A DNA stretch of 64,000 nt, from contig NC_069004.1 of NCBI RefSeq assembly GCF_001194135.2, positions 15,350,178 through 15,414,177 on the forward strand, given 5' to 3'. How positions within the stretch are numbered: the stretch's first letter is position 1; the number at the start of each line of letters is the position of its first letter. This DNA is from Octopus bimaculoides (taxonomy: Eukaryota). Made by a program: the position numbers and the translations under genes. Below, in pieces: positions 766 through 64,000 of the stretch. A model generated the notes under the pieces. It made no database searches. It was not told where the DNA came from and saw only the letters and a program-made list of their open reading frames with translations.

Positions 766-861
766 TGGTGCCCCCCGCCATTGTTCTGTGCAGTAGTTGA
801 TGCATGCGTGGACCAAGGGCTCCAAAGAGATGGGATGGTAAGCCACGCGCTTCTAACAATG
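766..861 (-). CDS. TRIP12: TRIP12 exon [32 protein letters not shown] (96 nt, phase 1-1)
   Basis: Acceptor ttgcag| and donor CCA|gtaagt. Near-identical to the conserved TRIP12/UFD4-family '[20 protein letters not shown]' that precedes the ARM repeats. Confidence 0.95.
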
Positions 862-2039
862 CTGCAAATAAAAATAAAGATTCGTAAAAACATGAGAAAT
901 AAAAACAAAAAAAAGAGCTTTTTTCGTTTTTACAGTTCCAAATGATTTTGGATTAACCCAATACAAAAAAAAAAAATGCATGAAAACATTAGAAATACAT
1001 AATGAATCAGTATGTTGATATGAAGTAGCATTGTAAATATACAGCAAAGAGTTAACACAGCTGTGTTAACTAAAAATGATAAATCCCACAGAGGAAAACA
1101 TGTACAACTCAAATACTGCAAGTGGATATTTCACATATTGATTGAAATGATTGGTTATTGAGAGAATATTGTTGAAAAGCAAATAAATAAAACATACAAA
1201 TAAAACAAAACAAAACAAAAAATAAAGTCACTGAAAAGCTAAAGTACAAAATGCCATTGGAACAAAAGAGATGCTAAACGATCACTATTTGCCACCTTTA
1301 ACACACCACAAAATTAAATAATTGCATAAAAGAAATTGAAGCTAAAATGGAAGAATAACTTCAATACATGTTCATCTTTTAATGTCTGTTTTCCATGTTG
1401 GAATGGGTTGGATGGTTTGACAGGAACTGACAAGCCAGATGACTGTGCTGAGCTCCACCTGTAAAGACCATGCCAAAGTTGACAACTGACACCCTTCTTA
1501 ATGCCAACCACTTTACAGAGTGGCAACTAGCACAAGTGAAGTCACCAACTAACTCACAAGACAAAACCCCTCAAGTGAGTGGGTTGAAGGAAGTGAATGT
1601 ATGATAGAAAGGAACAGATGCTTTACTGAAGAGGAGATACATGGCTTGCCCAGCTGGAGAGAGACAGACAGAGATGGTAAGGGCATACCCTCAAGGTACA
1701 GGGTGAATGTGAGAGAGAATAGGGATAGGGGATAGAAAGGGTGAATGGGTAGGTAAATAGCGAGAGTGTGAGAGGTGGTTAGAGCAGGGGATTCAAATGG
1801 ATGCAGTGGATGGAGCACACAGTAGAGGTAAGGTCAATAGTGAATGTCAGGAGAGGAAGTGGACGAAATAGGAGTGGATGAGGGAAGAGGAGGAGTTGAC
1901 AGAGAGACCAATGTGAAGTGTAAGGCAGATAAATGCTATAATTTACAGCACTTGCATTAGTAGTGTTACAGTTGAAAGAGTGATGAAATTGAAGATGAGT
2001 TGTGGGGGAAAGGAGCTCATTTTTGCTGAGATGGACAGG

Positions 2040-4976: not shown

Positions 4977-5636
4977 NNNNNNNNNNNNNNNNNNNNNNNN
5001 NNNNNNNNNNNNNNNNNNNNNNNNNNNNNNNNNNNNNNNNNNNNNNNGGGGGGGGGGGGTTGCATTAGATAAGAAATGAATTGCTCTTAGTTTATATAAA
5101 CATCACCAACAAAAGTTTTATTCCTATTTCCTAATCTAAAATGGTTTTTATGTACATGAAACAATATCTCAGCTTATATTTCAAATCAAAGTCCTCACTT
5201 CTTTAGTCTCATTCCATCTCCCAATATTTTCTCAACAATAATGTTTCCTTTATTAGCAATAATATAAATTCTTAGTTTTCTTCTCTAGCAGCATTGAGGG
5301 GTTTATTGAATGACATTGTATTGGTCCTGTGTTTTAATTGTGTACAAATGCAGGAAAAGTATAATAGCACAGAAGCATTGTTGAGTGTATAAGTCACTGA
5401 TAGGGGACATCATCATGAACAGCCATCTTCCATGTTGACAAAACTTGAACAGTTTGAGAGGATCTGATGAACCCACTCACGTTCAGTAATCCTCATTCAC
5501 ACTAAAGCATAAAAAATTATATTAAATATCTACAGTAAACTGTCATGTTTTTTGACAGGAAACACAAAACCATTATTATTCTGAATATGCTTGTCAGCAA
5601 TAATATTTGGATTAGTAGCAAGGAATATATGTTTAC

Positions 5637-5711
5637 CTTGTAATCTGCCCATATCAGATTCTTCAGATTCACTCTCAGAAGTCATTGCAGTGGCTCCGGC
5701 AGAACTTGATG
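5637..5711 (-). CDS. TRIP12: TRIP12 exon ASSSAGATAMTSESESEESDMGRLQ (75 nt, phase 1-1)
   Basis: Acceptor ttccag| and donor CAAG|gtaaac. Matches the TRIP12 hallmark GESESDDSEMGRLQ. Confidence 0.93.
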
Positions 5712-6445
5712 CTGGAAATAAATATAAACAGTTGCAGCATTGGTATAAAACTCTCCGATGGAGGGGGTGGGGGGAGAATGGTTATAAAATTTTTTTATGC
5801 ATATAAGAATTCTGCTTTGCAACCATGTGATTTTGGATTCAATTCCAGTATGGGACCTTGGGCACATGTTCTGCATAATAAATAGCCACAAGGCAACAAA
5901 TACCATGTGAGTGAAAGTTATCCATCAGCATGTGCATGTGCATTTATACATGCACTCATACACCCACACACGTGTGTGGGTGTATACATATTCATACATG
6001 CAAAAGAGTTCCTTTAGCATTTAAATGATATACAAAATTAAACTTTTCTTTTTTTTTTTATTATCCTACAATCTCAAAGTTATATTTGTTAGTACTAACT
6101 CTGATATTTTGTTTTGAATATCTTGATATAGAAATTCTATATATTTTAGAAAAAAGTCCTTCTCAAAAAGATGAAAGAATATTAGTTGTCCTACAAAAAC
6201 TCCTGCTCAAATTATCTAGTCATACTGATTTCCAAGTGTGTAGGGTGGTCTGAGTAACTGGAAGTATGAACAGCAGGGCAGTAGACAAGCATTTATGGAA
6301 TCACGGAGTCAAGGCAGTCAATGATGGGGGGGAAGGGAGAGGATTGGAAGTGGTTGAAAGTTATGAACAAGTGTTGAGGAGAAACATCAAGCTCAACTGA
6401 CCTCAGTTGTTAGCTAGTTCAAAAGGGACTTTCCAAATCACTTTG

Positions 6446-6950
6446 TGAGTGAGTGAGTGAGTGAGTGCGAGAGTGAGAGTGCATGCGAAAGTGAAAGAGT
6501 GCGTGAGAGTGAAAGAATGCGTGAGAGTGAGTGTGTGAGAGTGCGTGTATGTGTGAGAGAGTGAGAGTGCAAGTGCGTGAGAGTGAGTGAGAGTGAGTAT
6601 GTGAGAGAGTGTGTGTGAGAGAGCATGTCGTGAGAGTGAGAGAGCATGTTGTGAGAGTGAGAGTGCATGTGTGAGTGAGAGAGCGTATGTGTGTGAGTGA
6701 GAGAGCGTATGTGTGAGAGTGAGAGAGCGTATGTGTGAGAGTGAGAGAGCGTATGTGAGAGTGAGAGCGTATGTGTGAGAGTGAGAGAGCGTATGTGTGA
6801 GAGTGAGAGAGCGTATGTGTGAGAGTGAGAGAGCGTATGTGTGAGAGTGAGAGAGCGTATGTGTGAGAGAGTGTGTATGAGTAGGATAGAGTGTGAGAAT
6901 GAATGAGTGTGTGTGTGTGTGTGTGTGTCTGTGTGTGTGTGTGTGTGTGT
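6446..6950. repeat. Complex GA/GT minisatellite (~22-bp GAGAGCGTATGTGTGAGAGTGA units) grading into (TG)n
   Basis: Directly visible tandem units at 6680-6870. Confidence 0.95.
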
Positions 6951-7011
6951 TCGTTCCTCTGAATTTTTGCAGACACTGCTTGAAAAGCGGCTTTTGTTTA
7001 TGTCCAGCAGC

Positions 7012-7240
7012 TTAACTCCTTAGCATTTACACCAACCATATCTAGCCAAAATATTCTACTTGTTTTGTGTTCAAACTGGCCAAATCTAATTTCTAACAAC
7101 TATCATACTATCATCACACTAAAAGTAAACAATCACTTCATTGAAATCTCAAAGCTACAAGATGATGCAGGATTAATTCAAAACAATGTGAATAAATAAG
7201 CATTACGTTTGACAGAGTAATCTGAATGCTTAAGTGTTAA
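7012..7240 (+). mobile_element. TTAA (piggyBac-type) MITE family 1
   Basis: TTAA at both ends, TIR-like CTCCTTAGCATT...AATGCTTAAGTG. Homologous to the copies at 23.6, 54.1, 57.0 and 61.0 kb. Confidence 0.75.
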
Positions 7241-7463: not shown

Positions 7464-7703
7464 CATTTCTNNNNNNNNNNNNNNNNNNNNNNNNNNNNNN
7501 NNNNNNNNNNNNNNNNNNNNNNNNNNNNNNNNNNNNCTGCATTTTCTCCTACAGTGGATCCTCCACTTGAGCCAGTATTTTCTGTATTCTGACCCTGAGA
7601 CATTGGGCTGTTGGCAAGCGGTCTCGACGTCCCTCCAGCACTGCTTCCACTAGTGTGACTGCCTAAGCCTTGCCGTTTTGTTACAGCCGAGGAACGTCGA
7701 CCA
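7464..7703 (-). CDS. TRIP12: TRIP12 exon SGRRSSAVTKRQGLGSHTSG...STVGENA, interrupted by an N gap (7471-7536)
   Basis: Acceptor tttcag|TGGTCG gives a phase-2 entry (AG+T = Ser). Donor AATG|gtgagg at 7463. The frame is open on the sequenced part. Confidence 0.85.
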
Positions 7704-7869
7704 CTGAAATAAGACAGAAAAAAAAACAAATCTTTATTTCCAATAAAACGTTTTCAGATGTTTGAATAACTATTGAAACATTCAATCCTCAGAAAAGGAA
7801 AGGTTAGTATATAAAAAATTAAAAAAAGGCAAACCTGCTATCTTCAATTTAGCTTTTGTGCCTCTCCTC

Positions 7870-10330: not shown

Positions 10331-12125
10331 TGTATTCCATCATTCATGCACACAGACACTACACATCAAACAGGACACAATATGCCACCAGGAATCAAAT
10401 TCGAGACCTTACGATCATGGGCCAAATACTTCTAACCACTAAACCACATGCCTTTCAAAAATACACAACTCTAGGGGGTCCCTCTTTAGACCCATTGTCA
10501 ATCAGAGACAGATCAGCATGTTATTTGCTGTTTTCTGGATTAATAATTTCGTCCTTTCAAATGTAACAACATGCACTTCGAAGAAGAAATCCCAAACATG
10601 CCAATCCCATTCTACCACAAGGTCACTTTGGATTGAGCCTAATTACAATGGTTCCAACAGACAAGGCAGTATTAGTTGTTAAAGCCAAAAATAATAGAAA
10701 AGCAAAAATACTGATGCCATCATAGAGATGTTAACACTATGCTTAACAATGATTACACTGAACTACTTTACCTTCCAAAATCTGATTGTGCTACCATCTT
10801 TCAGATATTTTAATATCGGAAGATTCTGTTTATTAACTATAACGCTTCATAATCATTAAATATGAATTCATACATAGGATTTGTAAGAAAATGAATTATA
10901 ATCCAAGTCTTAAAAGATCCATCATGATGCCAGACATGCCTGCATTGCATGATCTCAACTAAAATCTATTCAAAGCAGTACACATTGCACATGTATACAC
11001 AACATCCATAAATCTATACACACACATATATGCATCCATAAACCTATACAGTGAGACAAAGGACAACAATAAAAGCAACTTAAAATGAAAGTGAGGAGCA
11101 CCATATATGGCTCACACTGTGTCTGCTCTCTAATAAAACAAAGCTCTTCTTGTCCAACCACATTGATATATCATAAACACTTTAAAATATAATAACAGAT
11201 TTATGTAAACATTTTCCTTCCTGCTTCATTCAAACAAACAAAATGTATTCAAATCGCTACACTGGGGAGACAGAAATAACAGAGCAAAGTTAATGGGGTT
11301 AACATTTAATTTGTATTGTTTTAGAGAGGTAAAAACAAAAATTAAGTTCTATAGGAGAACTAAAATGTTTAGTATGGATCTAGGCAGTGAGTTTATGAAG
11401 ATGAAACATTAAAACAATGTAGTATAGAGTTAAGTTTAGAGAATAAGACATACAAATATGACATATTTGAGCACAAAGAAATTGGGGACTCAGAGAATGT
11501 TGTGAAGTGTTACCTATCCAGTACATAGTCTTCTATTGGAGGCAATGTTAAATGCATGTGGCCCATCCATCTACATGTGTCAAGTACACTATGGTAGGTG
11601 TGAAACCAACTGTATGATGTAAAATATACATTTATATGAGTATGTTGTATGGGGTAGCTGCTAAAAGCTAAAAATAGTTTCAAGCTCTGAACACAGAACT
11701 CAAGTTTTGTGATGTACTCTTCAATAAGAGTCTGTAATGTCTAGCATTTGAACAGAGTCTACATTGGCCTGGGAGTGTGTCTTGTTCACAAAGGGAAATA
11801 TATAGTTTATGTTACATATAGTTATTTACTGGTTAATTAGATTAATGCATATTCAAAGAGAGAGAGTAATATATCTTCACAATATTCATATATCATATAA
11901 ACTTAACAAAACATTAATGAAGGCAAAAATTAACAAGATTGTATTAAATGTAATGTGTTACTTGATAGACATGAATAAAACAAACAAGTAAATAAAGGAG
12001 AAATAACCATAATTTGAGTTTGCTAAATTGGAAATTTATTCAAGATTTGAACCTTGAAAAATATTAATGATATCTTAGAATGTCTAGACACCAATTCAAT
12101 AAATGTCAAAATAATTTAACCTTCT

Positions 12126-12190
12126 AATATAAAACAGTCCATTACAACAGGAGAAATATAAAACAGTCCATTACAACAGGAGAAATATAG
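12126..12190. repeat. 29-bp perfect tandem duplication
   Basis: ATATAAAACAGTCCATTACAACAGGAGAA twice. Confidence 0.95.
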
Positions 12191-12525
12191 CAACTGCACA
12201 AAACATGAGGAATTCAACTATGAAAAGTGTTATACAATTCAAAATAATTGGAATTCACATAATTTTACAACTGAGAAAACAATGCTCATGTAGGTTAACA
12301 AACATGAGCATTTTCCACAGACGTACAGATGATAAAAAAATAATAATTATAGCTAGTTTATTCCAAAATAAACAAATCAAATCCTTCAGCCTGTTGGATA
12401 ATCAAAACTACAACACAAACAGATATGAAAACGAAAACATAATACAGCAAAGAAATATCTTACATTGCATTTAAGTGAAGAGAGGAACCAGTGTTGAGAA
12501 GAGTTCAAATAAACGGAAAACTCAC

Positions 12526-13290
12526 CTACTGCTAGCACAGGATCCCGTCTTTTTGGCTTTGAGACCTGACTGGACGTTGTCCAACCTGTTTACCCCACTT
12601 CTTGAAGTAGATGATCTGTTTGGCACTCCACTCCTTGTTTTCTTAGATGATGCTTTTAATAGAGAAGCTTCTTTTCCACTGTTCAGATCTTGAATACAAG
12701 TCCTGATCTTTTTAGAAGGTATTGGGCGGACTTCGGCTGCAGCTGCCAAACTGTCTTCTTCAGTAGTAACAGCTGCAATTATTGTACCTGATGGACCAGC
12801 GTTGTTCAAGTGAAGTTCACTTGTTAAAGACGTTGGGTTGCTCTCTCTCTTTTTGGTCTGTTTCCTTTTCCCTCGGCTTTTTACCTGATTATCAAGTCGA
12901 ATGCTTGAAGTGGGCAAAATTTCTGAATGGGAACCAGAACGCAAATTCTTTCGTGATCCTTGTTTTTTTATAGCTTTAGAATAACTAGAATCCACAGCTG
13001 ATCCTGATCCACTTGGTTGTGGGAGGCTCTCTGAGCTCTCTAACTGAATAGGCAAAGGATTATCTACTTTAGTGGTACGAACAGGAATTTTTGACTTAAT
13101 TCGTTTGGGTTTTGCACCAAAGCCACCACTGTCTATAGGGTTCTTGTAAGCATGTGCAGCCACAAAAAATTCTGACTCAGAAGCAGATTCCTCAATAGTT
13201 TCTTTGTTAAATCGTTTCCTGCTTTTCTGTACTTTGTCAGAAGAATCTGAAGTCTCTCTAGGGAAGCCTTTTGCAGTAGTTTTACCACCA
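12526..13290 (-). CDS. TRIP12: TRIP12 large exon, 765 nt (255 codons), disordered K/R/S-rich region ending KKTGSCASS
   Basis: Acceptor ttttag|TGG and donor AG|gtgagt. Open in the frame of ORF 12522..13163 and phase 2 at both ends. KTGSCAS matches the vertebrate TRIP12 'KTTGSCAS' (recalled). Confidence 0.92.
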
Positions 13291-13606
13291 CTAAAATTAA
13301 GAGAAGATTAGTATTTAGATACAGCCCCACTGACAATGTAAAAAAGGAAACCAACAATGTGACATAAGAGTCCCTATTAACATGAAATACAAACATGTGC
13401 AGCCTAGAGAGGAGTTTCAGATTTTACTCTCTAAAACAATCAACTAGTAGCAATCAACTATTACTTCTAATCACCAGCATTGCTCTGATTACCAATATAC
13501 CCTATCATACTAGAGCTTAAACTTATGTGTAAACCTAAGCAAAAGTAAGAATGAGTAAAGGTTTGCAGACATTATGCAAGTAAGTGTGTGTGTGTGTGTG
13601 TGTGTA

Positions 13607-13646
<40 letters not shown>

Positions 13647-14829
13647 GGGAGGGTTATGGGTGAATGTCACAGAGTGTAGGTAAAAGAAAAGTTTTGGAGA
13701 GAGGGGATGCGAAGGCAAGAGATAGCTGTTTATGTGAGTTTGTCTGCAGATCTGTCATATATGCATGTATACATAGTTTTAGAAAAGAAAAATCAGTTGG
13801 TCTTCTCACCTTAATGACATCAATTTTATTTTCAAAGAACAAAAGCAACAAACACAAATATTTCTACAAATTAAATGGAATTTAATTTACAGAAACAACT
13901 ATGGGTAAATTAAATTAGGTACAAACTTCAGGTATTAATTTTTATCCTAAAAGTAAATATCTTTCCTTTGTTAGGTTTGTGGTCCAACATTTAATAAAAA
14001 CAGTTTCTAAAATTTTACTTTAAGGAATTTAGAAAAAAGCATTTAGTTTACAATCTACACATAAAAAAAGAACAATGAACCTAACCTGATTTTCTTTCAG
14101 TCTGTGAAAGATCCTAAACTTAAGCTTAAATAGAACTTGAAAAATTTTGCCTTCATTAGGAGGCTATGCAAGATCAGTAAGAAAGTTGACATGTTTGTGT
14201 TAAATAGTACTTACATCTCATAAAAATAAAACAAATTAAAACTAGAAAGCCTCATATTTTAGATAAGAGAACAATAACAGTTCTTTTACTGGTTTCATTC
14301 ACTGATTTGTGATCATTCTGAGAAACAGTTTTGTTTTCCTGTATCTGATTATATCAACACCAGTTTTTAGCTGGTGATATTTTAACACGGTGACTAGGAC
14401 AAAGATTCAACTTAGAACATGAAGGTACATAACAAAATGCCACAAGGTATTTTCTCTGACATTCAACAGACACGGTCATCTATTACTCTAGGCTTTCATT
14501 TTGTTCTTCCTAATTACTTTAAAATTAGACTATGAGCCATTTCAGCACTTTGTTCTTGTTACTATAAAAACCATTGCAAGCACTACTTTTAAAAATATAT
14601 AACCTGGAAACTTTACAGGTTTACAAATTACAAGAGATAAACAAGATTAGGGTTCAACTTTAAAGTATTGTTTTTTGTATGTTTCTATAACAAGAGACAA
14701 GATTTATCAAATCAATAAATCATCGCAAATATTGTAGCTCTAAAAAAACATCTAAGTAGTATAAGAGGATTAAAGCTGAATTATCAATATGAAAGGAAGC
14801 TGTTACTGAAAAGGAAGGCTTCTATAACT

Positions 14830-26128: not shown

Positions 26129-26247
26129 CTTCTATTCTTATTTAATGCGTTGTCAGGAGTATTAGTGCAACTTTCTCTGTCTCCCCCTTGTTGCCGATGT
26201 GATCGTCTGCGAGACCCCCCAAGATAACTTTCAGATTGGTCGGCCAT
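26129..26247 (-). CDS. TRIP12: TRIP12 first coding exon (coding part), MADQSESYLGGSRRRSHRQQGGDRESCTNTPDNALNKNR + 2 nt
   Basis: The exon runs 26129-26288 with acceptor ttacag| and donor AG|gtaata. ATG is at 26247, with an in-frame TAA 6 codons upstream. The phase-2 end joins the 13290 exon in frame. 'LGGSRRRSHR' resembles the vertebrate TRIP12 N-terminus 'PGGSLRRSQR' (recalled, not searched). Confidence 0.8.
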
Positions 26248-26288
26248 AGGCAGACAACCGGTTTAGGTTCATCCCCTAATTTAAATAC
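26248..26288 (-). other. TRIP12: 5' UTR part of the start-codon exon of TRIP12
   Basis: Lies between the AG acceptor at 26289-26290 and the ATG. The in-frame stop implies that a non-coding first exon lies further right. Confidence 0.65.
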
Positions 26289-27439: not shown

Positions 27440-28222
27440 AACAGTCAACGGTGTTGGAGAGTATAAAGATTAAAGTTGTAGTTGAGAAAAAAGTTAGCAG
27501 ACATGGCAGACTGGAAACCATTTGAATATCGGAAAAGAGTTGCCTGTATCATAACGATTTGTGCCAGGTATTGAAATGCCAAATTCATTATTACTCACTG
27601 CCCTCCGAACACTATAAAGGCTGTAAGATGTAACATGGGTGTCATGAAAACCAAGTTCTCTCAAACTGTGATGGTGTTTGTGTGCATCTCCAGCAACAGT
27701 AATGTCATGCTGCCCCACATCTTTGAACAGGGTCTTAGGCTCAATTTAGATGACTATGTGAAGCTATTAGAGACTACAGTCAAACCCTGCTGGAAGGCCA
27801 TATATGTAGCAGCAGAATTCAACTCCTTGCTATACGTGGTTGTTAGAGACTTTCTACAGTTTCACCAGCCACAATTTCTAGCTTCCTGATTCTTCCAATT
27901 GTAATTCCATAGATTACAATGCGGGGTGTGGTCGAGAAAGATACTAACCGCTCTGCCTGCAATACCAAGGCTGAGCTGGTGGCCAAGACCAAGGAGGTGC
28001 TTGATCTTCCCAAGGACACAATGAGGACTGCATGTGACAGAATCCAAGGGTATCTTGAAGCCATGGTGGAAGCTGAGGGCTTCTACTTTGAGCAAACATA
28101 TCTCTCAGCCATAATCTAATTGATATTTGAGTTTTTTAAAGTACTTTTATTTTTAGATGGGATATTGTGTTTTCTTTTCCATTTAAGCAAACTTTCAAAT
28201 TTAGCCCAAACAGCCTGTATAT
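27440..28222 (+). mobile_element. Tc1/mariner maT (DD37D) relic, internally deleted
   Basis: MADWKPFEYRKRVACI start at 27503 is fused to KTKFSQTVMVF...VKLLETTVKP, followed by the RGVVEKDTNRSACNTKAELVAK...EAMVEAEGFYFE C-terminus. Confidence 0.8.
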
Positions 28223-30599: not shown

Positions 30600-31150
30600 A
30601 AGTAGGGGAGAAGATAAATGGTACATGGTGAGCTTTCATTTCTGCTAGAGAATTACAGCATCAATATTCCAATGGGAACACTATGTGACCAACAAAATCC
30701 TGGAAAGATTCAACAATGAAAGCATCGAATCACTGATCATGAAACAGTTTTCAATAGTCAGGACATGTAACAAGAATGGAAGAGTCAAGGTTCCCACACA
30801 AAGTCTTATTCAGTGGGAACACCTCAGGGAAAAAACCACAAGGTTTCCCTCTTCGCAGATACAAGGACCAACTCAAAGCAACACTGAAAGTCACTGGACT
30901 TCAGCATAAATTGTTTGAAACACAAGCCTGAGACCATACAAAGTAACGATGCTCCATCACCATCAGAAGCAAAAACTTCAAAACCACCTGGAGAGAAGGG
31001 GGGGGGGAATCAAATGACAGGAGTCAAAGGCTCAACAAAAAATCAACTTCATTCTCCACCAACATTACCATGCAGACAATGCCATCAACTCCTCTATGCA
31101 AGAATTGGTCCACTTAGTCATCAATTCCATTTCTATAACAGAAGCGTTCA
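30600..31150 (+). mobile_element. RTE (BovB-like) 3' end with C-terminal zinc-finger remnant
   Basis: WEHYVTNKILERFNNESIESLIMKQ, RYKDQLKATLK, LPCRQCHQLLYARIGPLSHQ. Confidence 0.7.
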
Positions 31151-31509
31151 GCAAAGAAGAAACTAAATTCTCGGATACAAGATAAAGCCACAGCTACCAA
31201 CAGCTCTATGAATTAAAGTCACTTCTTTCATAAACCGAAAATTGTACAATTACCAATAGGCTTCAGTGTTTCTTTAATAAGACAATCGAAGGATCACTGT
31301 ATCTTGGAAGTATATAATATGGTATTTCACTTTCTGTATTCAAAAATACACATTAACTTAGAACTACTAAGTCTGTTGGTTCCACTTAAGGAGAGAAGTG
31401 GAAATGAATGACATCAAAAAAGTCTTTTCTTTACTAAGACGATATATGTCAAGAAACTTGGACATGCTTTCACAGTGGACAGCAAGCATGTAGATACATA
31501 CAGGACAAA

Positions 31510-31884
31510 GCATAAATAATGATCATTACATATTTTCCTTTATTGTAGTAAATTTGACTTACAGCTGTTTCCAATGTTCATTATAGGTATGTTATTGATA
31601 GATTTACTCAATTGGCCCACTGATCAGTTGAGAAAAATTGAACAACCTAGAAAATTAATGCTACTTTTGTCAGTCATTTCTGGTTGTAAACCAAGTGTTC
31701 CACTTAGTTATAACCAGAAATGATTGACAAAAGTAACAATTTTCTAGGTCATTCAACTTTTCTCAACTGATCAATGGGCTAACTGAGTAAACCTATCAAC
31801 AACAAACCTATAACGACTACTGGAAACAGCTGTAAGTCATATTTACTACAACAAAGAAAAATATGTAAGAACCAATATTTATGC
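31510..31884. repeat. Long inverted repeat (fold-back), arms ~185 bp, 3-nt loop
   Basis: 31510-31697 aligns to the reverse complement of 31701-31884 with 24 substitutions and 2 small indels (hand alignment, ~87% identity). The loop is TTC at 31698-31700. Confidence 0.95.
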
Positions 31885-32100
31885 CTTTTGTACACTACTC
31901 TGTATGAAGACCAGTATAACTGGAGCACAACCACAGATTTACAATATGGAATGTTGATGAACGGTAACCTCAGACCCTGCCACAAGAATATGCAGAGTTC
32001 TTTACTAATCTAAACAATACTGTTAGCCTGGTGTACTAACAGAGAGCTTATAAAGTATTTTTCCTGGACTGATAATCCCTCATTAATTATATATATATAC

Positions 32101-32161
<61 letters not shown>

Positions 32162-32204
32162 GATACACACATACATATACACAGACAAATTTAAATATGC
32201 ATAG

Positions 32205-32536: not shown

Positions 32537-33405
32537 TCTCAAGATGTCTTTCTCAAGCATGCTCCATATAATAATCCAAGGGATTACAGTCGAAAGAACA
32601 AGGAGGCCAGAAATTGGGACTGGTGAAGTCACAGGAACTCTCCAACATTCTGTTCTGACTCTTTCCAGAAGTATAGCATAGAGCCAAATCCTGCTGCCAC
32701 ATATATGGCCTTCCAGCAGCAATCCTCTCCAGCCAAGGTTTCACCACAATCTCCAGAAGCTTCACATGACCATCTGAACTGAGCTTAAGGACCAGTTCTG
32801 AAATGTGGGCAGCATAACGTCACCAGCACAGTTTGAGAGAGCTTAGTTTCCGTGATATGTGGGATGCCACATGGATAGTAGGAATGCCTGTTGTTCTGGA
32901 TATTGAGCAACTGGTCCTGGCAAATGTTCTCTTCATAAGAGAAGAACCAGATCATCCCTGGCTCAACGGCATACCTCAGCTTATTCAAGAGTTTCTTTGC
33001 CTTTATCAAGCACTTCTTGGCCATCAAAATTTACCCCTTGCCCAAGTGGTTGCAAAGGTCCTTGTTCAGAGCCAGCTTCATGATGGTTACTCCAACGCTC
33101 ATCTTTCTTGCCAAAGCCCAGATTCTCTTGCTCGGATCTTCCATCACCTTGCCCAGCAGATGCATTCAGAATGCCTGCTGTGTCCCATCCAGCTGGGCAC
33201 AACTTTCCAGTCTCTGTTGCAGATATCCATGTCATATCTTACGGTCTTCACACTGTTCAGAGAGCATTGAACAGTAGTTATGATGTCGGTAATTTGATAC
33301 TTGACACAAATAACCATGATACAGGTAACTCTTTTATAATATTCAAATGGTCTCCAGTCCTCCATCTCAGCTAATTTTTCTCAACCACAACTTTAACCTT
33401 TATGC
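32537..33405 (-). mobile_element. Tc1/mariner maT (DD37D) relic, same family as 27.4-28.2 kb
   Basis: MEDWRPFEYYKRVTCI, WFFSYEENICQDQ, WQQD...FWPPCSFDCNPLD. There are 37 residues between the QQD aspartate and the NPLD aspartate (hand count). Confidence 0.85.
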
Positions 33406-42071: not shown

Positions 42072-42419
42072 AGAATTCACAAAAAAAAACAATGGACGAA
42101 GGCAGGTGGTGTAGAAAACAAACAGATGTATTAGTATAACGCTCNNNNNNNNNNNNNNNNNNNNNNNNNNNNNNNNNNNNNNNNNNNNNNNNNNNNNNNN
42201 NNNNNNNNNNNNNNNNNNNNNNNNNNNNNNNNNNNNNNNNNNNNNNNNNNNNNNNNNNNNNNNNNNNNNNNNNNNNNNNNNNNNNNNNNNNNNNNNNNNN
42301 NNNNNNNNNNNNNNNNNNNNNNNNNNNNNNNNNNNNNNNNNNNNNNNTATATATATATATATATATATATTTCCTCACTTAAATTCTATTCAATTATTTG
42401 GGTGATAAGAGACAGTGTC

Positions 42420-42800: not shown

Positions 42801-45624
42801 CATATGGTCTTGCAGTCGTAGGAACTTGGAAGGTTTTGTGTTCTAATCTAAGGGTGGATGACATAGCCTCTGATTTCAATGGACTACGATGTCCTTATGT
42901 TCATGCACACACACACACACACACATTCTTGACATTTACAAGTTCCAATTTAATTTCCTACATTCAACCTTTCATTCAAATACTTCATTATTTAGATGGA
43001 GGCTTCAAAGAGCAATCATTCTAGATTTACAAACTGACCTGTTTATATAGACAACTTCTTAAAACATAAGATTCTACATTTTTCTAGAATAGACAAATCT
43101 TGAATAATTACAACCAAAGCAGTCAATCCAAAAACTTGTATATTCCAGCTCACAACATTTTCCTACATTTACAAATCATGGTTTGTAACCATAAAGAAAC
43201 TTCTAAGGATATTTCACTATGGTTACAAGTATAGTCACTTATATAATCAGCAAGGCATTTTGCTATAGTTTCTTTTTTACTACCATTTGGTGCCAAATGG
43301 ATGGACTTCACTCTTAGAAAAAGAACAAAAACATTTCATATTGAAATATTGGAGGTTTTTTTAGTGCTATCAGTATGTAATTAACAGCTATATCATAATA
43401 ATAATATTGGAACCATTGCAACAATGTGCTAGATTAAACTAGCCTAACATCAGCACATCCAGAATCTGAAATATCTTAAATGGTGTACCAACATCCTCAT
43501 ACGTTTTGTTTAAACATCTCTATGAAACCTGCCACCTACCCCTCTACTCAACCTCACACTAATCACAGTTGCCTCTTCTTACTACTTGACACAGTTACAC
43601 ATGTAGAAATCTAGCTGCAAATAAACTGAAAGACTCAACAGAATACACTTGATAGATGAGTGATAGTGTTTTTTTAAGGATGGTACAAGTTATGGAACGA
43701 ACAGAGAATTGTAGTTTACTGCAGTAACACATCTTACTTAAAAACCTCCAAATGGAAAACTGGTTTGATATGTAAGAGGTTAACTATGGTAAACTCCAAT
43801 CCCTGCTACGACTCATACAGTCACTGTCCGACTCATTTACAGCACATTACCATCCCAAAAACTATCACACACATTTAGCATCAAGATTTAAAATTAAAAA
43901 AAGAATCAATAACTGTACTGTGATGAATACACCAAAAGCATGTACTGTGGAACAACAGCTATCACCTTCAGTCTCTACCTTGTGCATCTTCATTGTGCCC
44001 TTCACCAAAATCTGCTGACAGGGCAGTGAAGAAAACAACAAACATGTCCAGACTGCCATACTGAAGCAAATCGTAAGGCAATATATCAAGAGTCACAGTA
44101 TGGCAATCCGCATACAGAGCATTGAGTACGTGGAACTACTTCATGCCATATGTCATCTCAATCAAGGTTGAATTATGCACTGAATCAAAGAAGGACCTCT
44201 ACATGATTCCTGGCTGCTAGAACTAGAAACCAAACATAACCCTATCACTTTAAAAATGGAAAACATTGGCTAATGTAGTTGGAATATTACAGAAGGCTTC
44301 ACTATTATTATATTAGACTGACCTATACTATATATATAAAAAAAAAAGCTCCAACACAAAACATTTAAACCTCCATAAAAAAAACATAAGATAGTCCTAG
44401 ATACACTGGGAAGAAGATATGTGGCCAGAATAGAACTGACATGATTTTTGTCATAGATCTCTGTCACCTAAGTTGGCCTGTGGCTAAACAAACATTATAC
44501 TAGATTACATTACACTTAGATGTGTCAAGGTTGACATACTAAAAGTATTTCATGTGTCTCTATGCGTTAGAACCAAGAACTGCAAATAACCGTCACCAAA
44601 TTTCTTTCCCCCTCCTCCTGATCTTATTACCATAAGTACAATGTCACTGACAATGTAATCATCTCTTTACTGTGACTACACAACTAATAGAACCACTGCC
44701 ACCACCAGATAATTTTCCCTAACACTCCCTTCAATCCCATACGCCACACAACACCAACTACATAGTGGAACTGTGGCAGACACAAAGGTGACTAACCTGT
44801 AGAATTATACCATTTACTGTACAACAGTAGTAGTAGTAATTTATAATTGACTTTTCTACAACAAATCTACAGTGATACCTATCCTTGAATATCCATTGAA
44901 ATGGCATTGATTCAATTATCAGAAAGACATGAAACAGCAAAACATCCCATTTAAACAACCACCCTATTGAAGTTTCATCATACCAATATTTTCAAAACAC
45001 GTATTCTAAATTTACAAGATAAAACAAGAAAAGGAAAAGCAAATAGGTTTTTTTTTTTTTTTCAAATTTCTTACAGAAAAATGGAAAAAGGAACAATAGT
45101 GAGATGTCTATTTCTCAAATTGATCCTCATAAATATAATATTAACTTTTACAGTGAAAATCTTAGCAATCCATTTATCCAAATTTGAGCATTTTATCAGC
45201 CAAAAGATTTAAAAGTAAAAAGCATCAGGTGATGGTGGAACTATTATATATGAAACTAGCAAAAAATGGTAGTGGACATTTAAAATAAACCACAAAACTT
45301 TGGTGATCAATGCCAGACAGAGTACACACACACACACATTATAGAAAAATTAAACCAAGACTAAAATAAAAAATAGTTTGGATTGGAGTTGGTAGTTAAA
45401 AACCAAGTATCATTGGTAATGTGTGTGTACGTAGAGTGGATACTGAGCAAATTTTTATGTGGGAGAGGACAGTAGCGACAGAGATAAATAGAGCTATTTA
45501 GTGAGGAGAGAAATAACAAAAAAAGAGGCTTGAAGTGAGGGCGATGAAAGAGACAGAAGAGCACCAGCAATATGGACAGAAGAAAGCAAGTGAACACAGA
45601 CACGGGAAAATAAACAGTCTGACC

Positions 45625-46085
45625 AGCTGTAATGAGACCGACGGAATTAGACCAGCCGAGATGAGAGACAGGTGGATAAGACCGACGAAGTTAGATCAGC
45701 TAAGATAAGACCCATGGAATCAGACCAGCTAAAATAAATGATGAGATAGATGGAGTCCGACTAGCCGAGATGAGACAAGTGGAGTCAAAACAGACGGAAT
45801 TAGACCAGCTAAAATAACGAGATAGAGTCAGACCATGAGACAACAGTTAGGTAGGAGTCAGACCAGCTGAGATGAGGCAAGTGGAGTCAGACCAGCTGAG
45901 ATGAGGCAAGTGGAGTCAGACCAGCTGAGATGAGGCAAGTGGAGTCAAACCAGCTAAGAAGATTATTAATAAGACCGACGAAGTCAGACCAACTGAGATT
46001 ACGATGTGAGAGATTTGGAGTCAGACCAGCCAAGATAATGCCGAGAGAGTTGGAGTCAGACCAACAAAGATAACAATGAGACAGA
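45625..46085. repeat. Degenerate minisatellite, core GAGTCAGACCAGCTGAGAT; three exact 29-bp units near 45855-45945
   Basis: Unit GAGTCAGACCAGCTGAGATGAGGCAAGTG repeated exactly, flanked by diverged units with variable linkers. Confidence 0.9.
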
Positions 46086-47621
46086 AAAATGTAGGTTTAT
46101 TATAAAACAAGGGGGCAGGGTTAACATCTGTTTTTTATGCATATGAAATTTTCAATATATATTCACCACAAAAAAAAAAATCTACATAACAGGAGGTGGC
46201 GAAGACTATTTAGAAAACGCACACATTATAGCTTATAACATTCGAAAATATCTTATTTTTCTCATAATAAAAGGAATATTAAGCGTAGTATTAAAGTATC
46301 GACAAGGGCAGGACGCGTAGCATTTATCATAGAAAGACACGATTTATCGCTCAATATAAAGAAAATGGAATAAATATGTTCAAATTTCATAGGAAAACAT
46401 GAGATTTAATGTCGAGGTTCATCACAACATAATGGAGAGTTAATTTCTTTGTGTGCTATCATAATGGGTGTATATTTTAATCAAATAGCATGTAAACAAT
46501 TAGATTATTAACTGACATAAAGAAATCTTAAGTTGTAGTCAATATAATCAGGGATCTGCGTTCATTAAATACATCTAAGATTAGTTATATAAAGTCGTAC
46601 AAATATATATATATAATTACATATTTCACTATTATGCGCGTGCGTGTGTACATTTATATGCACATACGCACACACAAATATGCACACATTTTATATACGT
46701 AGCCTATATATTGACCAAACACACAAACACGAGCAAATTAACACGAAATTAAAAATACAATGTGAAGATTACACGCACACACAAGGAATAGGAGAATAAG
46801 TAGGGTAGAAAACGAACAGATCTTAAACAGCAGGAGACTGCGTCATCGTTTTAACAAGGCTGGTTTGGATACGATCAGGGATCGAAACTGCGACATCACA
46901 CACAAATAACAACCTTACACAATACAAACCAACTATGTAGCTTCTATGCAGTCGTCCAACCTGATTTTTTTTCTTTTTAAACCCAACTAAATTAAGGACA
47001 TATTTGAGAATACAGTTTTTCGATGACTAGTAAAAAAAAAAACGGAATGGTCATATCTGGAATACCTATATCTACTTAGACAAGGCTAACCTAGGGCTAA
47101 GCAACAACGTTACACAATAGTTCAACTATCAAAATAATTGATACCCGAGGAGTTTAGCGTTCGCTTTATTGTTCTTTAGTTTATATTGATTACTACGACT
47201 GAGGGGTACACTGGCGCACAGCCTTAAATATATTACAAATACCTCTTTTTGGGTTAAAATAATTTCAATTTTTTTTTTTTTAAGTTGGGGGTAAGGTATC
47301 AACAATAACGCTAATTTCACAATAATTTACTCAGGTGAAAAAAAAATAAAGGGGGACGTATCGTATACGTTATTGTCGCATCGACCCAAATTAGCCCCCC
47401 CCCCTGACAAAGCACACTTGTGATCAAAGGTTTTCCAGTTGTAGTCATCCATTCCCACCCCAATATATATCTATGACTACATTAACTAATGCATACTTCC
47501 TTTTTAAGACGTTAAAATGATTTGAGGGAGATTTGGCTGCTATTCAAAGCAGGTCAAACAGCGACATAGAGGCTGCCCCATTAGCGCATTACAGCCGTGT
47601 GTTTCTGTATGAATATAGAAC

Positions 47622-47654
<33 letters not shown>

Positions 47655-48060
47655 GGGGAGAAATAGATAGGAGCCGCAAATCCTTTTAAAATATTAAACT
47701 TCAAAAAGCTGTTTTCCTAATCGTTATTATTGTCGCTGTTGGTCAGTCGCCCTGTCACGACACGATTTAGAACTTGTTTTTAGAGTTTGATAAAGAATTT
47801 TTATTGAACTGATTGTTATTTGTGTTTGTTGCTGGAAAGANNNNNNNNNNNNNNNNNNNNNNNNNNNNNNNNNNNNNNNNNNNNNNNNNNNNNNNNNNNN
47901 NNNNNNNNNNNNNNNNNNNNNNNNNNNNNNNNNNNNNNNNNNNNNNNNNNNNNNNNNNNNNNNNNNNNNNNNNNNNNNNNNNNNNNNNNNNNNNNNNNNN
48001 NNNNNNNNNNNNNNNNNNNNNNNNNNNNNNNNNNNNNNNNNNNNNNNNNNNNNNNNNNNN

Positions 48061-48095
<35 letters not shown>

Positions 48096-48655
48096 GTGTG
48101 TATGTTCTGGAATAAAGCCGATGATTCACTCTGGTGTTACTAAGAGTTTCACTTCAGATGTGAAACTCTGAGTAGCGTCAGAGTGATTTCTGCCATGTAT
48201 TGAGTACTTTTTTGTTTCATTTGTATTTCTAAACCAAATCGTGTATGGACAGATGTGTGTGTGTATGTATGTGTATAGTAATGAACGACTACATACATCA
48301 AAGATAATTCAATACAATTGTGGAGTAACAATTTTATTGTAGGGTATGAATTGTATTTAAATGACTCGCCAATACCCACTAAATATGTGGGTGTGCGTGT
48401 ATGAGCGATAAACAGGCAAAATTCATTAGAAAAAAAAACACACACACACATGCTTAATTTCATGATAAAGAAATTCTTGTGACCATAAAGGTTGTTATTG
48501 TACAATCTAACAGTTATAACATTGTTATGTTCTTCCGTTTCCAAACTAAATCCTCATTCACGTTAACAATAAAATCAAAATTCATTCGAAACAGAACCAA
48601 CCAAAATGGAGAACAGAAAAGCTATTTAGTTTATTTTGCTTATATATGTGTGAAT

Positions 48656-49305
48656 TGTTAGTTTATTATTCGTCTTAATATTAAAGTTTAGCTTTCTTTA
48701 TGGCTTAAGAAAGGGGCAAAAAAAGACTTTATATTATTAATTATTGATATTATTATACTGTAATATATATATATATACGTATATATGTATGTATAGACAC
48801 ATATATACATATGATTATATTGTTAGTTTATTACTCGTCTTAATATTAAAGTTCAGCTTTCTTTATAGCTTAAGAAAGGGGCAAAAAAAAGACTTTATAT
48901 TATTAATTAGTGATATTATTATACTGTAATATATATATACGTATATATGTATGTATAGATACAAATATATACATATGATTATATTGTGAGTTTATTACTC
49001 GTCTTAATATTAAAGTTCAGCTTTCTTTATAGCTTCAGAAAGGGGGGAAAAAGACTTTATACTATTAATTATTGATATTATTACACTGTAATATATATAC
49101 GTATATATGTATGTATGTATAGATACAAATATATACATATGATTATATTGTTAGTTTATTATTCGTTTTAATATTAAAGTTCAGCTTTCTTTATGGCTTA
49201 AGAAAGGGGGAAAAAAAGACTTTATACAATTAATTATTGATATTATTATACTGTAATATATATATGTATGTATAGATACAAATATATACATATAATTATA
49301 TACGT
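48656..49305. repeat. Four-copy ~164-bp tandem repeat
   Basis: Units start at 48656, 48821, 48985 and 49149 (TGTTAGTTTATTA.TCGTCTTAATATTAAAGTT.AGCTTTCTTTAT). Confidence 0.95.
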
Positions 49306-49817
49306 ATGTCTCACATTTTGTAGACATACAACGGATATAATTATGGAGCAAACGTTTTTTTATGAAATTTGAGGATTTTTTTCTAAAAAAATGTAGATGT
49401 AAAGACGATTAATAATTATCCTAAATAATCAGTTCACAGTATTTCTTTGAGAAGATGAAGTGTAAAAATAAAAGAGTCGACATATAAATAAATGAATAGA
49501 GAGAGAGACACTGGAAATAGAAATGAAGAAAACGTTACCATATAAACAGTGTGGTCGAAAACTCCTGATAGACCAGTCCTAGATTTGTAAGACTCATTTC
49601 TTTCCTCCTCCGCCTTTCCTGTAAGCCATATATCATTTACAAGGTTGCCTCAGAGTTCTACAACAACACTAGCAACTGTTTCAAAAGACAAAATTAAAAT
49701 GACGGGGGAGAGAAAGAAAGTAAATACTGACTGGGGCTTTTTTTAGAAAGAAAGGTTCCAAGTTGTTGGTCAAGTTTTTTTTTTTTTATTCCAAACACAG
49801 ATGATCACAGTGAGAAA

Positions 49818-49844
49818 TGCGCATGCGCCACCTCATTACCAAAC
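49818..49844. promoter_or_regulatory. NRF1-like palindrome (TGCGCATGCGCC) with nearby ETS-like ACTTCC
   Basis: GCGCATGCGC at 49819-49828, followed by aaacttccttccgc. Sequence match only. Confidence 0.5.
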
Positions 49845-49859
49845 TTCCTTCCGCTAGCC

Positions 49860-50210
49860 ACCCTTTTTCTGTCACTCTAACACTCTCTCTCTCATTTATC
49901 TTCCTCTCGTCCACTTCTGCTAACTATCTGTCTCTTCTCTTTCCCCTTCTCTCTTGTATCTATCTTCCTTTCTTGCTCTCTCTCTCTTTCACCTTCTCTC
50001 TTGTATCTATCTTCCTCTCTCTCTTTCACCTTCTCTCTTGTATCTATCTTCCTCTCTCTCTTTCACCTCACTCACTCCCAATCTTTCTCTCACTATTCTT
50101 CTAACTCACTCCGCTTTCATCTGTCACCCTTTCTCTTTCTTCCGTTTCACCTGTCACTCTTTCTCTCTTCCCTTTCACCTCACTCAATCACCCTTTCTCC
50201 TCCTCCTTTA
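49860..50210. repeat. Polypyrimidine/polypurine tract with 37-bp tandem units
   Basis: About 3 copies of CTTCTCTCTTGTATCTATCTTCCTCTCTCTCTTTCAC at 49944-50070 within a ~350-bp C/T-rich stretch. Confidence 0.9.
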
Positions 50211-51178
50211 AACCTTATATATAAAACAATTTAAGTAACAATTTCACATTTATTTCATTCATATCTTTCCTAGAAAACTTTATTACTTCCAATTAAGAAA
50301 AAAAAAATCTTTAATATAAACACAAAAATCTATCTTTCCAAAGGAATTAACAACGAAAAAAATTCGACAGATTTTATAGCAATATTTTGTAATTAGTAAT
50401 CGTGTTGATACTTCTCTGTTCTGAAACACGACATTTTATGATTGTAATCGAATCCACAACAGAAAAAGATTACATCGTATTTTTTTGTCTTTCAAAATAC
50501 TTTCATGGCTTCTCACTGAGTCGGCCTTTCTACCGAACCGATGTGGCAAATTCTATACTAAAAGTACTACCCCGTCTCTAATTTGTCTCCTAATCAAAGC
50601 TCATTTAACGTATTTACACGTTTTGTAGCCTTCCGTCCAGAGTTAAGGCAAGAAAAATCACTCCAACGAAACAGTTAGATGACGATGATGATAATTAAAA
50701 ATAATAATAATAATAATATTAATAAATGAAGCTGTGACCTCCACTAACATCTTTATTTTCATGCCTTACTCTCGCTATTTGTTCACAGAAGGTTGTGAAG
50801 GCGAGAGATAGGTGATAAAACACTCCAATCTAAAATATATCGCACATATATCTTCCTTTTTCAGTCACTTTTGACAAACGATCTCCACTTTACCTCTCTT
50901 TAATATCGTCGTGGCCACGAATGTAATTACCATTAATAGATACATTGATTTTTAAACAGCCTACATCAACTGACCTTGTGTTGCATCAAAACAATTATCT
51001 TCTATATATATATGATTGGAATATCATCTGTTCATTTCAGATTTTATATATATATATATATATATATATNNNNNNNNNNTAGAAAATAAATTCGATGCAG
51101 ACAACTAAAAATATTATCTTCTGCATTGATGTCTTAATTTTTTCGAAAATCACAAAATAATCAAAAAAGCTGCTTCTT

Positions 51179-51187
51179 CGCCATTTT
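51179..51187 (-). promoter_or_regulatory. YY1-like motif AAAATGGCG
   Basis: CGCCATTTT on the plus strand, oriented with TRIP12. This motif is typical just downstream of housekeeping TSSs. Sequence match only. Confidence 0.4.
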
Positions 51188-51908
51188 CCACAAAAACGAA
51201 TCCTCCAGTAAAATAAGTTTTCATAGCATTAAATTCGTATGGAAAGTTTCCAAAGCAATTTTGTGTACACAGAAATTGCAAAACTGGGACACTTATCTAT
51301 ATTGAGGTAAAAAGCACACACACACACACACACAAACATACGTGTCTATAAATATGTACACACACACACACACACACGTGTGTATGTCTGTCCATCTATC
51401 TATGTTATCTATTTATTCATGTTTACTACCCAACCAGATGGTTTCGGGTTCTGGCCCACGGCGGAGCATCTTGGGAAAGTGTCTTCTACTATAGCTCAGG
51501 GTTGACCAAAACGTTTAAATGGATTTGATTTGGTGGTCGGAAACTGAATGAAACCTGTTATATATGAAACACGCCGCTTGAGTATGTGTATTAATGTATG
51601 TATAATTAATGTGAGTGTGTATCTGCAAATACATACATACATGCATGCTTCTCTCGTTGCCAAGGCAAAAGGTGATAGTTGTAAACGAGCGTCATTCATT
51701 TCTAATATTCTGCAAAAAATATGTATGGTCATGACGAAATGTTACCTTGTTTGGAAACAGAGAGAATTGACCATAGGATGGGTATCCAGCCATACAAAAT
51801 ATCTTAATAAACTCCATCCAACCTAAGCAAGCATAGAAAAGTGGATGTCAAATGATATATATATAAATACAAATATACATACATATATATATATATACAT
51901 ATAAATGG

Positions 51909-52025
51909 AATGTTTACAGTACCTAGGTTTCTCAAGTGATCACCCATCTAAGCACTAACTAGGCTTGATGTTGCTTAACTTCAGTGATTGGACGAGAACC
52001 TGTACTTTCAACGTGATATGGCCGT
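51909..52025 (-). pseudogene. 5S rRNA pseudogene (near full length, decayed)
   Basis: Reverse complement reads ACGGCCATATCACGTTGAAAGTACAGGTTCTCGTCCAATCACTGAAGTTAAGCAACATCAAGCCTAGTTAGTGCTTAGATGGGTGATCACTTGAGAAACCTAGGTACTGTAAAC, which is the 5S layout. Box A (AGTTAAGC) is intact, box C is mutated and the 5' end is lost into a (CA/TG)n tract. Confidence 0.85.
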
Positions 52026-52317: not shown

Positions 52318-52794
52318 TATAGATATATATATATACACACACACACAGATATATATATATATGTATTTATAAANNNNNNNNNNNNNNNNNNNNNNNNNNN
52401 NNNNNNNNNNNNNNNNNNNNNNNNNNNNNNNNNNNNNNNNNNNNNNNNNNNNNNNNNNNNNNNNNNNNNNNNNNNNNNNNNNNNNNNNNNNNNNNNNNNN
52501 NNNNNNNNNNNNNNNNNNNNNNNNNNNNNNNNNNNNNNNNNNNNNNNNNNNNNNNNNNNNNNNNNNNNNNNNNNNNNNNNNNNNNNNNNNNNNNNNNNNN
52601 NNNNNNNNNNNNNNNNNNNNNNNNNNNNNNNNNNNNNNNNNNNNNNNNNNNNNNNNNNNNNNNNNNNNNNNNNNNNNNNNNNNNNNNNNNNNNNNNNNNN
52701 NNNNNNNNNNNNNNNNNNNNNNNNNNNNNNNNNNNNNNNNNNNNNNNNNTATATATAATGGTGCAGGTGGGGGGGGGGCATGTGATTGAGAAGC

Positions 52795-54113: not shown

Positions 54114-54408
54114 TTAACCCTTTAACATTTAAACTGGCCATATCTGACACAAATATTCTACCTGTGTTATGATCAAACTGGCCAGATTCGGCCTCTCACA
54201 CCTACCCCACAATATCATTCGAAAAATAAACAATCACATCATCAAAATCTCAAAACTACAAGATAATGAGTAGTTAATTCAAAACAATGTGAATGACCTT
54301 TTGACATTCAGATTACTCTGTCAAATGCAATGCTTATTTATTTACAATGTTTTTTAATTAATCATGCATTATCTCATAGCTTTGAGATTTTTATGATGTG
54401 ATTGTTAC
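54114..54408. mobile_element. Two partial TTAA MITE family 1 copies in opposite orientation
   Basis: Plus copy 54114-54295 lacks its 3' end. A minus copy starts at 54296 with its right TIR and is truncated at ~54408. Confidence 0.75.
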
Positions 54409-62464: not shown

Positions 62465-64000
62465 GTCCTTTGTCATATCTTTGATGGCATTCAACATCTT
62501 AAGATCGGTCTTCACCACTGTGTCCCATGCTTTTCTGGGTCTCCCTCTTCTATAGGTTCCATCCACATGTAGTAATTGTCAAGTGTTTATGCAGCTATCC
62601 TCATCCATACACATCACATGACCATACCAGCATAATTTTCATTCTTGCACAACACATCTAATGCCTTTGACATCTAATTTTTCTCTCAATACAGTTGCAC
62701 TTGGTTATATAATCACACTGACATTGCACATCCATCAGAGCATATTACTTCATTTCTTTATAGTCTTCGCCTGTCTTCTGCATTAAGGGCCCATGTCCAA
62801 ACAACCATGTAGTATTACTGTTTGTACAGAAGCATCATACAATCTGCATTTCACTCTGACAGAGAGGAATTTTGTTACCAGCAGAGGTAATAGCTCTGTG
62901 AACTGTCTCCAGGCAGTTCTTGTTGAAGCAATTATATTTTCAGAACATCCCCACTCACTAACAATAAGGCCACCAACAGAAACTATCTACTACCTCTAAG
63001 AATCCTTCTGGGCATTCGAGAAAATCTATTTCTGATGTAACCTTCCTGATTATTGCTCTTGCACATCTACCTCATACATCATCTACTTTCTCTGTTAACC
63101 TTCCTGATTCCACAGCACCTCTTGCATATCCTTAGTTTGCATTTGGTACATCATATGGAATTTTAACTTACATATTTTCTACATATCAAGCAGGACCATT
63201 TTCTTGAAAGGCGTAGAGAACTGTCCATTTTTCTGCTTAATTTAGTTGTTGCTCAGTTATCTTTAAGGCCCTTTCATTCCAAGTTTTGCTTCTATATCTG
63301 TAATTTCTACAGATACAGCTTTAAGAATGAAGTCATCAGCATGCAGCAATGACTCGTCTGAAATTCCCGCTATGGCCTGAAAGACAATGATGAATACGAG
63401 GAGACTGAGAACTGAGCCCTACACTTTGCTAACTCACCTTACTGACAGCACCCCTGTACATGGCTTGTACATGGCTATCATAAACCATTTGCCTACTTCT
63501 AGCTTCCTGATTAACTGCCAGATTACAGAGCAAGGGACCCTGACAAAGGCTTTCTTCAGGTCAACGAATGCCAAGTGCTGTGGTTTACTTTGAGCCAAAT
63601 ACTTCTCTATTAGGAAAAGAGCATTAGTAGTGCTTCTTCTTGGCATAAAATCAAATTGCATCTCATTTAGGCTAACTCTCTTCCCAGATAACCATGCTAT
63701 AAGTCTTTCTGTAACTTTCATGACCCAGTCCAACAATTTGATGCCACTGTAGTTTCTTTTCGCTAAGGCATCTCCTTTATCTTTGCAACAGCTGACCCGC
63801 ATGCTGCTACACCAGTCGTTGGCTATGATACCTACCTGTACAACCTAAATGACTATGCAGGTGACAAGGCAGTATCCAACTCTGTCAGATATTCTAAGCA
63901 TTCTCAATGGTAATTCCTGATGGACCAGGGGCTTTCCCTACTTTCATACTGTTTTTAACTTGGATAGCTGGTGCTTTTGTTGAAACTGTGTTGGGAAAAC
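62465..64000 (-). mobile_element. RTE LINE relic (RT domain through 3' end), runs off the window
   Basis: KGDAL..NYSGIKLLDWVMKVTERLI..QFDFMPRRSTTNALFLIEKYLAQSKPQHLAFVDLKKAFVRVP and downstream HADDFIL. Confidence 0.85.

Follow-up and report, generated by a model that had tools for sequence, protein, structure and literature searches.

The window, that is, the whole 64-kb stretch of Octopus bimaculoides DNA analyzed here, contains coding exons of TRIP12 on its minus strand and, upstream of the TRIP12 start codon, a near-perfect inverted repeat that was delimited by local alignment as a hairpin of about 390 bases (Table 1). The original prediction had named the gene correctly: the minus-strand exons 5709–5638 and 862–764, once spliced, match human TRIP12 (PDB entry 9ken_A, E = 3.4e-15). 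A PDB search with the N-terminal TRIP12 exons gave no match. The start-codon exon is preceded by a long polypyrimidine tract and an acceptor (ttttacag) ending at 26289, and is followed by a donor (gtaa) starting at 26128. The protein used for comparison with the large N-terminal exon, P0001, derives from a genomic contig of a related species. Two Logan contigs of a related species (L001 and L002; SRR11869394 and SRR11869391) are 84.6% identical to the window over 3.5 kb (10862–14390), an alignment that covers a TRIP12 exon and intron and in which the intronic differences number 106:69 for sense-strand C/T versus A/G. A low-complexity tract of about 600 bp (6406–7019, minus strand) separates two TRIP12 exons; the T/H/S/L-rich open frames found in all three of its minus frames are spurious and not coding.

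Table 1. Positions of the TRIP12 exons, the hairpin and neighboring features in the window
Feature	Position	Strand	Remarks
TRIP12 coding exon, 33 protein letters	764-862	-	tttgcag directly before; 9ken_A match when joined
TRIP12 coding exon	5638-5709	-	ends ...SESESEESDMGRLQ, directly followed by gtaaa; joined with next exon, gives the human TRIP12 match
TRIP12 coding exon, approximate limits	7544-7705	-	tblastn, 83% identity to P0002 residues 297-350
Large Ser/Lys-rich N-terminal TRIP12 coding exon	12528-13298	-	protein 97% identical to P0001
TRIP12 start-codon exon	~26129-26288	-	ATG at 26247; tblastn, 79% identity to P0002 residues 1-39
Two related frame remnants	32556-32819, 27716-27917	-, +	46-58% identical to each other
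Decayed non-LTR retrotransposon frame tail	30649-31163	+	ends ~350 bp before the hairpin
Outer 7-nt extension CATACAG	31497-31503	.	pairs with 31900-31906 in both folds
Left arm	31505-31697	-	3' arm in TRIP12-sense RNA; aligned to the reverse complement of 31701-31891
Apical loop, 3 nt	31698-31700	-	alignment end points; RNAfold loop slightly larger
Right arm	31701-31891	-	5' arm in TRIP12-sense RNA; local alignment
Outer 7-nt extension CTGTATG	31900-31906	.	8-nt bulge (31892-31899) between it and the right arm
Undepleted-CpG block, candidate TRIP12 promoter/first-exon region	45501-52000	-	from CpG observed/expected; probable placement

The acceptor in front of the ATG exon makes this exon internal, so an untranslated exon must lie further upstream. 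The best candidate region is a block with an observed/expected CpG ratio of 0.5–1.2 (about 1.0) between 45.5 and 52 kb, as against 0.1–0.3 elsewhere; of the 472 CpGs in the window, 126 are in this block, which looks like an unmethylated TRIP12 promoter block inside an otherwise heavily CpG-depleted region. On the plus strand A outnumbers T (and on the sense strand T outnumbers A) from position 1 to about 48 kb, where the skew vanishes. It is likely that the block contains the TRIP12 promoter and first exon, in which case the hairpin, 5.3 kb upstream of the ATG exon, would lie in intron 1. A location in the first (5'-UTR) intron is thus the most likely one and is well supported, and the intronic setting originally proposed stands on indirect cues: the ATG-exon acceptor, the CpG block and the break in skew. 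Together with asymmetric substitution below 46 kb, the acceptor and the CpG block and skew break at 46–52 kb also suggest, indirectly, that minus-strand transcription may cross the hairpin. The assembly has six gaps in the window (N runs totaling 946 bases, at 4977–5047, 7471–7536, 42145–42347, 47841–48060, 51070–51079, and 52374–52749), two of which fall inside the putative promoter block, so that the TRIP12 first exon may be partly absent from the assembly. Upstream of the putative promoter, an open frame at 63437–63844 (minus strand) matches RVT_1 just at the curated cut-off (E = 6e-7) and represents a retroelement fragment.

Local alignment recovered the hairpin where it had first been noticed, with the same 3-nt loop, and a possible extension to about 31497/31905 took shape as the 7-nt pair CATACAG/CTGTATG beyond an asymmetric bulge. 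The arm alignment comprises 165 matches, 24 mismatches, and three indels (2, 3, and 1 nt), an arm divergence of 12.7%; the two indels counted earlier are right for the narrower arm limits then used, the third (2-nt) indel falling outside them. The mismatches divide into 19 transitions and five transversions, a ratio of 3.8. Fifteen of the transitions (nine A/C and six C/A on the plus strand) give G-U pairs in the minus-strand RNA, and the remaining four give G-U pairs in the plus-strand RNA, a 15:4 split with a two-sided binomial p of 0.0192. The mismatch classes, the split and the p value of about 0.02 in the original prediction were all reproduced. A second tight inverted repeat (54106–54294/54305–54412 and 54229–54406) consists of two head-to-head copies of a short repeat family; it is about 73% self-complementary, has transitions at 4:4, and lies outside the inferred transcription unit.

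Folding of both strands with RNAfold gave −254.0 kcal/mol for the sense (minus-strand) RNA and −212.7 kcal/mol for the antisense (plus-strand) RNA, with z scores against shuffled sequences of −32.9 and −24.8, and the structure is far outside chance expectation. The sense fold contains 185 base pairs, 16 of them G-U, with uninterrupted helices of 41, 28, 24, and 21 bp, and so provides the stable duplex of tens to hundreds of base pairs within one transcript that characterizes long intramolecular dsRNA. In the antisense fold there are 176 base pairs, five of them G-U, and the longest unbroken helices measure 28, 19, and 16 bp.

Substitutions elsewhere in the window were polarized by comparing each copy of four repeat families with the consensus of its other copies. 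On the sense strand of 18 repeat copies below 46 kb, 71 A>G changes stand against 46 T>C, and 78 C>T against 65 G>A, with per-site ratios of 1.54 (A>G/T>C) and 1.30 (C>T/G>A). Transitions of the G-U-making kind are in excess of the A-C-making kind in these copies by 149:111 (57.3%, p = 0.02; bootstrap 95% interval 0.50–0.64, from these 18 repeat copies only). In the 13 copies beyond 46 kb the two kinds are equal (86:86, 50%), and the ratios are 1.06 and 0.93. Distant inverted repeat pairs, which cannot form a tight hairpin, were scored for plus-strand A-C:G-T mismatches, which number 91:71 (56%) where both copies are inside the unit (<48 kb), 178:151 where one copy is inside, and 29:29 where both are beyond 48 kb; as the pairs are largely made up of the same repeat copies, this estimate is not independent of the polarized one. 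The window therefore displays the pattern expected of transcription-associated asymmetry, namely, inside the unit, more A>G than T>C changes on the non-template strand, with no such excess outside it. An excess of this kind along whole transcripts is established for vertebrates (PMC2927911). In the repeat copies of the TRIP12 unit, the asymmetry agrees with it in sign and is of similar magnitude; it is absent upstream of the putative promoter and is accompanied by a sense-strand skew of T over A. It differs in that it concerns one invertebrate gene and 18 repeat copies, and in that the C>T/G>A ratio is raised at a great distance from the start site, a component that mammals show only locally, in the first 1–2 kb.

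The asymmetry inside the TRIP12 unit has the sign needed for the G-U bias of the hairpin: a palindrome starts out strand-symmetric, and strand-asymmetric mutation will skew the mismatches between its arms. The hairpin had originally been read either as a maintained RNA structure or as a record of strand-specific A>G and C>T mutation on the transcribed strand. The mutational reading is supported by the 57% inside the unit versus 50% outside, and the reading as a maintained structure is not needed; the strand, however, has to be corrected, since the excess is on the sense (non-template) strand and not on the template.

Compared with this background, the hairpin retains a modest excess. The observed 15 of 19 (79%) differs from 57.3% with a one-sided binomial p of 0.043, and 15:4 from 149:111 with a Fisher p of 0.09; a chi-square comparison of three classes (G-U-making, A-C-making, and transversion) between hairpin and background gave p = 0.08. 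In simulations (n = 150), perfect palindromes made from one arm were given 24 substitutions sampled from the gene-wide spectrum before both strands were folded. The mean sense-minus-antisense energy was −10.8 kcal/mol (sd 15.2), and the observed gap of −41 kcal/mol was reached in 2.7% of cases; with a symmetric spectrum, none of the simulations reached it. The transition:transversion ratio of the hairpin also exceeds that of the repeat copies (2.2) and of the orthologous intron (1.4, p = 0.028, from an alignment of 2300 intronic sites of the window with the contig of the related species), the five transversions among 24 mismatches comparing with 42% expected from the orthologous intron. Pooling of the G-U-compatible changes against the remainder yields p values between 0.0007 and 0.008, according to which null is used. 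This residual excess is marginal, unexplained and null-dependent and concerns 24 sites, at a locus chosen for looking biased. Decay of CpG was rejected as the main source of the bias or of the transition share because it is strand-symmetric in expectation and a single mismatch of the 24 (at 31814) is in a surviving CpG context. The bases 5' of the 15 sense-strand G's (U in six, A in six, C in one, and G in two) are in line with the AT-rich composition and give no sign of an ADAR neighbor preference. The orthologous intron of the related species is 13% divergent from the window; the 12.7% between the arms accordingly gives no sign of slowed evolution, and the palindrome would be about as old as the split from that species if its arms drift neutrally.

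It is probable (at roughly 0.6) that the hairpin is an ordinary neutral intronic inverted repeat, whose G-U pattern mainly records transcription-associated mutation and not a selected RNA. A non-coding near-palindrome with two arms of about 190 bp would have arisen in what is now the first (5'-UTR) intron of TRIP12, as a palindromic transposon copy or by inverted duplication in place, and would then have drifted neutrally. With the sense (non-template) strand gaining A>G and C>T faster than their complements, the sense RNA would have come to carry the arm mismatches mostly as G-U and the antisense RNA as A-C, and sampling noise in 19 transitions may have lifted an expectation of about 57% to the observed 79%. 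During transcription, the TRIP12 pre-mRNA would form, as a by-product, a duplex of about 185 bp, which ADAR may bind and promiscuously edit before the intron is degraded.

Two origins are conceivable for the palindrome, insertion of a palindromic transposon of the foldback or MITE-like kind and inverted duplication in place. The element is an inverted repeat over its entire length and has no coding capacity, as in a Tc1/mariner MITE with terminal inverted repeats. The longest open frame is 76 codons, in keeping with the lack of an ORF noted from the sequence, and the frames have no relatives in the collections searched: no related protein was found for the 66-codon frame of the left arm in a very large protein collection, the 76-codon frame of the right arm and its flank has no match among 1.84 billion representatives, and three look-ups by exact match, with frames from the hairpin and its flanks, returned nothing on record. 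A 19-mer common to both arms occurs at two places in metagenome contigs and a 16-mer matches viral contigs at 24 places; no match is longer than about 20 bases, and these are chance matches of seed length. Searches of the window with blastn (word size 7) and nhmmer detected no second copy of either arm, as originally reported. The one match obtained with a concatenate of the flanking frames is a reverse-transcriptase protein that corresponds to the neighboring retrotransposon tail and is not an orthologue; within this tail, the frame 30758–30928 (plus strand) is 44% identical to residues 503–559 of P0003, a protein of 631 residues with a reverse-transcriptase domain. A tRNA scan for SINE heads found no tRNA genes.

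On a transposon origin, the mismatches themselves could be inherited. The hairpin would then belong to a multi-copy family of palindromic transposons with a consensus that already forms an imperfect hairpin; most differences between the arms would pre-date this insertion, the A-C/G-U asymmetry would be a family trait, and it would match the TRIP12 sense strand by coincidence. Such an account is unlikely, although the structure lends itself to it. Tc1/mariner-type elements usually have a TA target duplication and a terminus of the CAG...CTG style, and the ends of the hairpin can be read in this way, as TA dinucleotides at 31499–31500 and 31903–31904 flank CAG...CTG. However, TA is self-complementary and both copies are inside the outer 7-nt repeat, so they have no independent weight as a target duplication. 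If the ends of the repeat are placed at 31497/31906, there is no target duplication, in keeping with the original prediction. The two frame remnants on either side of the hairpin contain motifs that look like the C-termini of Tc1/mariner transposases, but Pfam lent them no support. MADE1 is a palindromic MITE that is the source of mir-548 hairpins, and palindromic repeats occur in C. elegans as well. Palindromic MITEs and foldback elements share with the hairpin a whole-element inverted repeat lacking a reading frame and possibly the TA-flanked CAG...CTG terminus; in contrast to MADE1, the hairpin is several times longer, is represented by one copy in 64 kb, and has no relatives among those searched. 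The single copy weighs against a multi-copy element, if weakly at a plausible genome-wide copy number, as does the lack of relatives in two very large protein collections and in metagenome and viral contigs. Inherited mismatches would furthermore leave to chance a bias whose direction fits the local mutational asymmetry.

Selection for the RNA itself is a quite improbable explanation. It would hold that the hairpin is kept as sense dsRNA in the cephalopod TRIP12 intron 1 pre-mRNA, changes that break pairing being removed and G-U pairs tolerated, with a role as an ADAR-recruiting editing inducer, an endo-siRNA precursor, or a splicing or processing element. The residual excess described above, the longer sense helices, and the scarcity of transversions are all what pairing-preserving selection predicts or allows, but the two-sided Fisher comparison is not significant, the locus is a single one picked for its apparent bias, and the arms have diverged to the neutral intron level between two species. 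Duplexes of about 185 bp are bound and promiscuously edited by ADAR, which tolerates and even prefers A-C mismatches. Such mismatches make good ADAR sites, so that editing in itself offers no grounds for favoring G-U pairs over them.

Precedents for functional intronic duplexes nevertheless exist. Editing of the Gabra-3 I/M site requires an intronic duplex that acts at a distance as an editing inducer, is conserved, and is located 150 nt from the edited exon (PMC3479170), and intronic inverted repeats of C. elegans associate with essential, highly expressed genes (PMC6239182). The hairpin resembles the Gabra-3 inducer in being a long intronic stem in a transcript with coding exons, and differs from it in its distance of 5.3 kb from the nearest coding exon. 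It has in common with Drosophila hpRNA loci an inverted repeat of a few hundred base pairs that could be diced. Those endo-siRNA loci are usually transcription units of their own and target genes with matching sequence. For the hairpin, no sequence matching the arms beyond chance was found within the 64-kb window, and hence no in-window siRNA target. A microRNA precursor was rejected, as the stem is about 190 bp, compared with a hairpin of about 60–90 nt, and no Rfam family reached its gathering score (MIR2606, MIR5380, MIR475, mir-384, and others scored 23–39 bits against thresholds of 52–150). A (TA)n/(AC)n microsatellite is located 200 bp from the hairpin (32088–32187); its Rfam match to mir-297 (44.5 bits against 90) is a low-complexity artefact. 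A role of the hairpin as an editing inducer or a source of small RNA is possible but unsupported.

The palindrome is highly unlikely to be an artefact of assembly or library construction (a fold-back chimera, for instance), even though the assembly has gaps. Such known artefacts are expected to have near-identical arms or sequencing-type errors, whereas 24 arm substitutions, mostly transitions, with only three small indels form an evolutionary pattern.

As a neutral intronic inverted repeat, the hairpin is likely to be an incidental substrate for ADAR hyper-editing that is removed with the intron. It compares best with intronic inverted-repeat dsRNA loci such as human inverted Alu pairs and those in C. 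elegans introns, with which it shares a long intramolecular duplex (predicted to be about 185 bp), a non-coding and probably repeat-derived sequence, and a probable position in an intron of a broadly needed gene. Inverted Alu pairs and their like consist of two separate repeat copies, whereas the hairpin comprises just one palindromic unit, closed by a 3-nt loop. Across animals, octopus among them, ADAR acts mainly on young inverted repeats (PMC9989829).

As it stands, the TRIP12 hairpin joins the intronic inverted repeats, a class from which most ADAR substrates of animals derive. In a decaying palindrome, the sign of the mismatches, G-U or A-C, reports which strand is the non-template strand, so that a G-U bias alone is no evidence of a selected RNA structure. 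A single 64-kb window sufficed to reveal both a transcription-associated asymmetry and a CpG-undepleted block resembling a promoter in an invertebrate gene. Should the residual excess of G-U pairs hold up across the genome, it would argue for selection acting on dsRNA in introns, in a group of animals that depends heavily on RNA editing.
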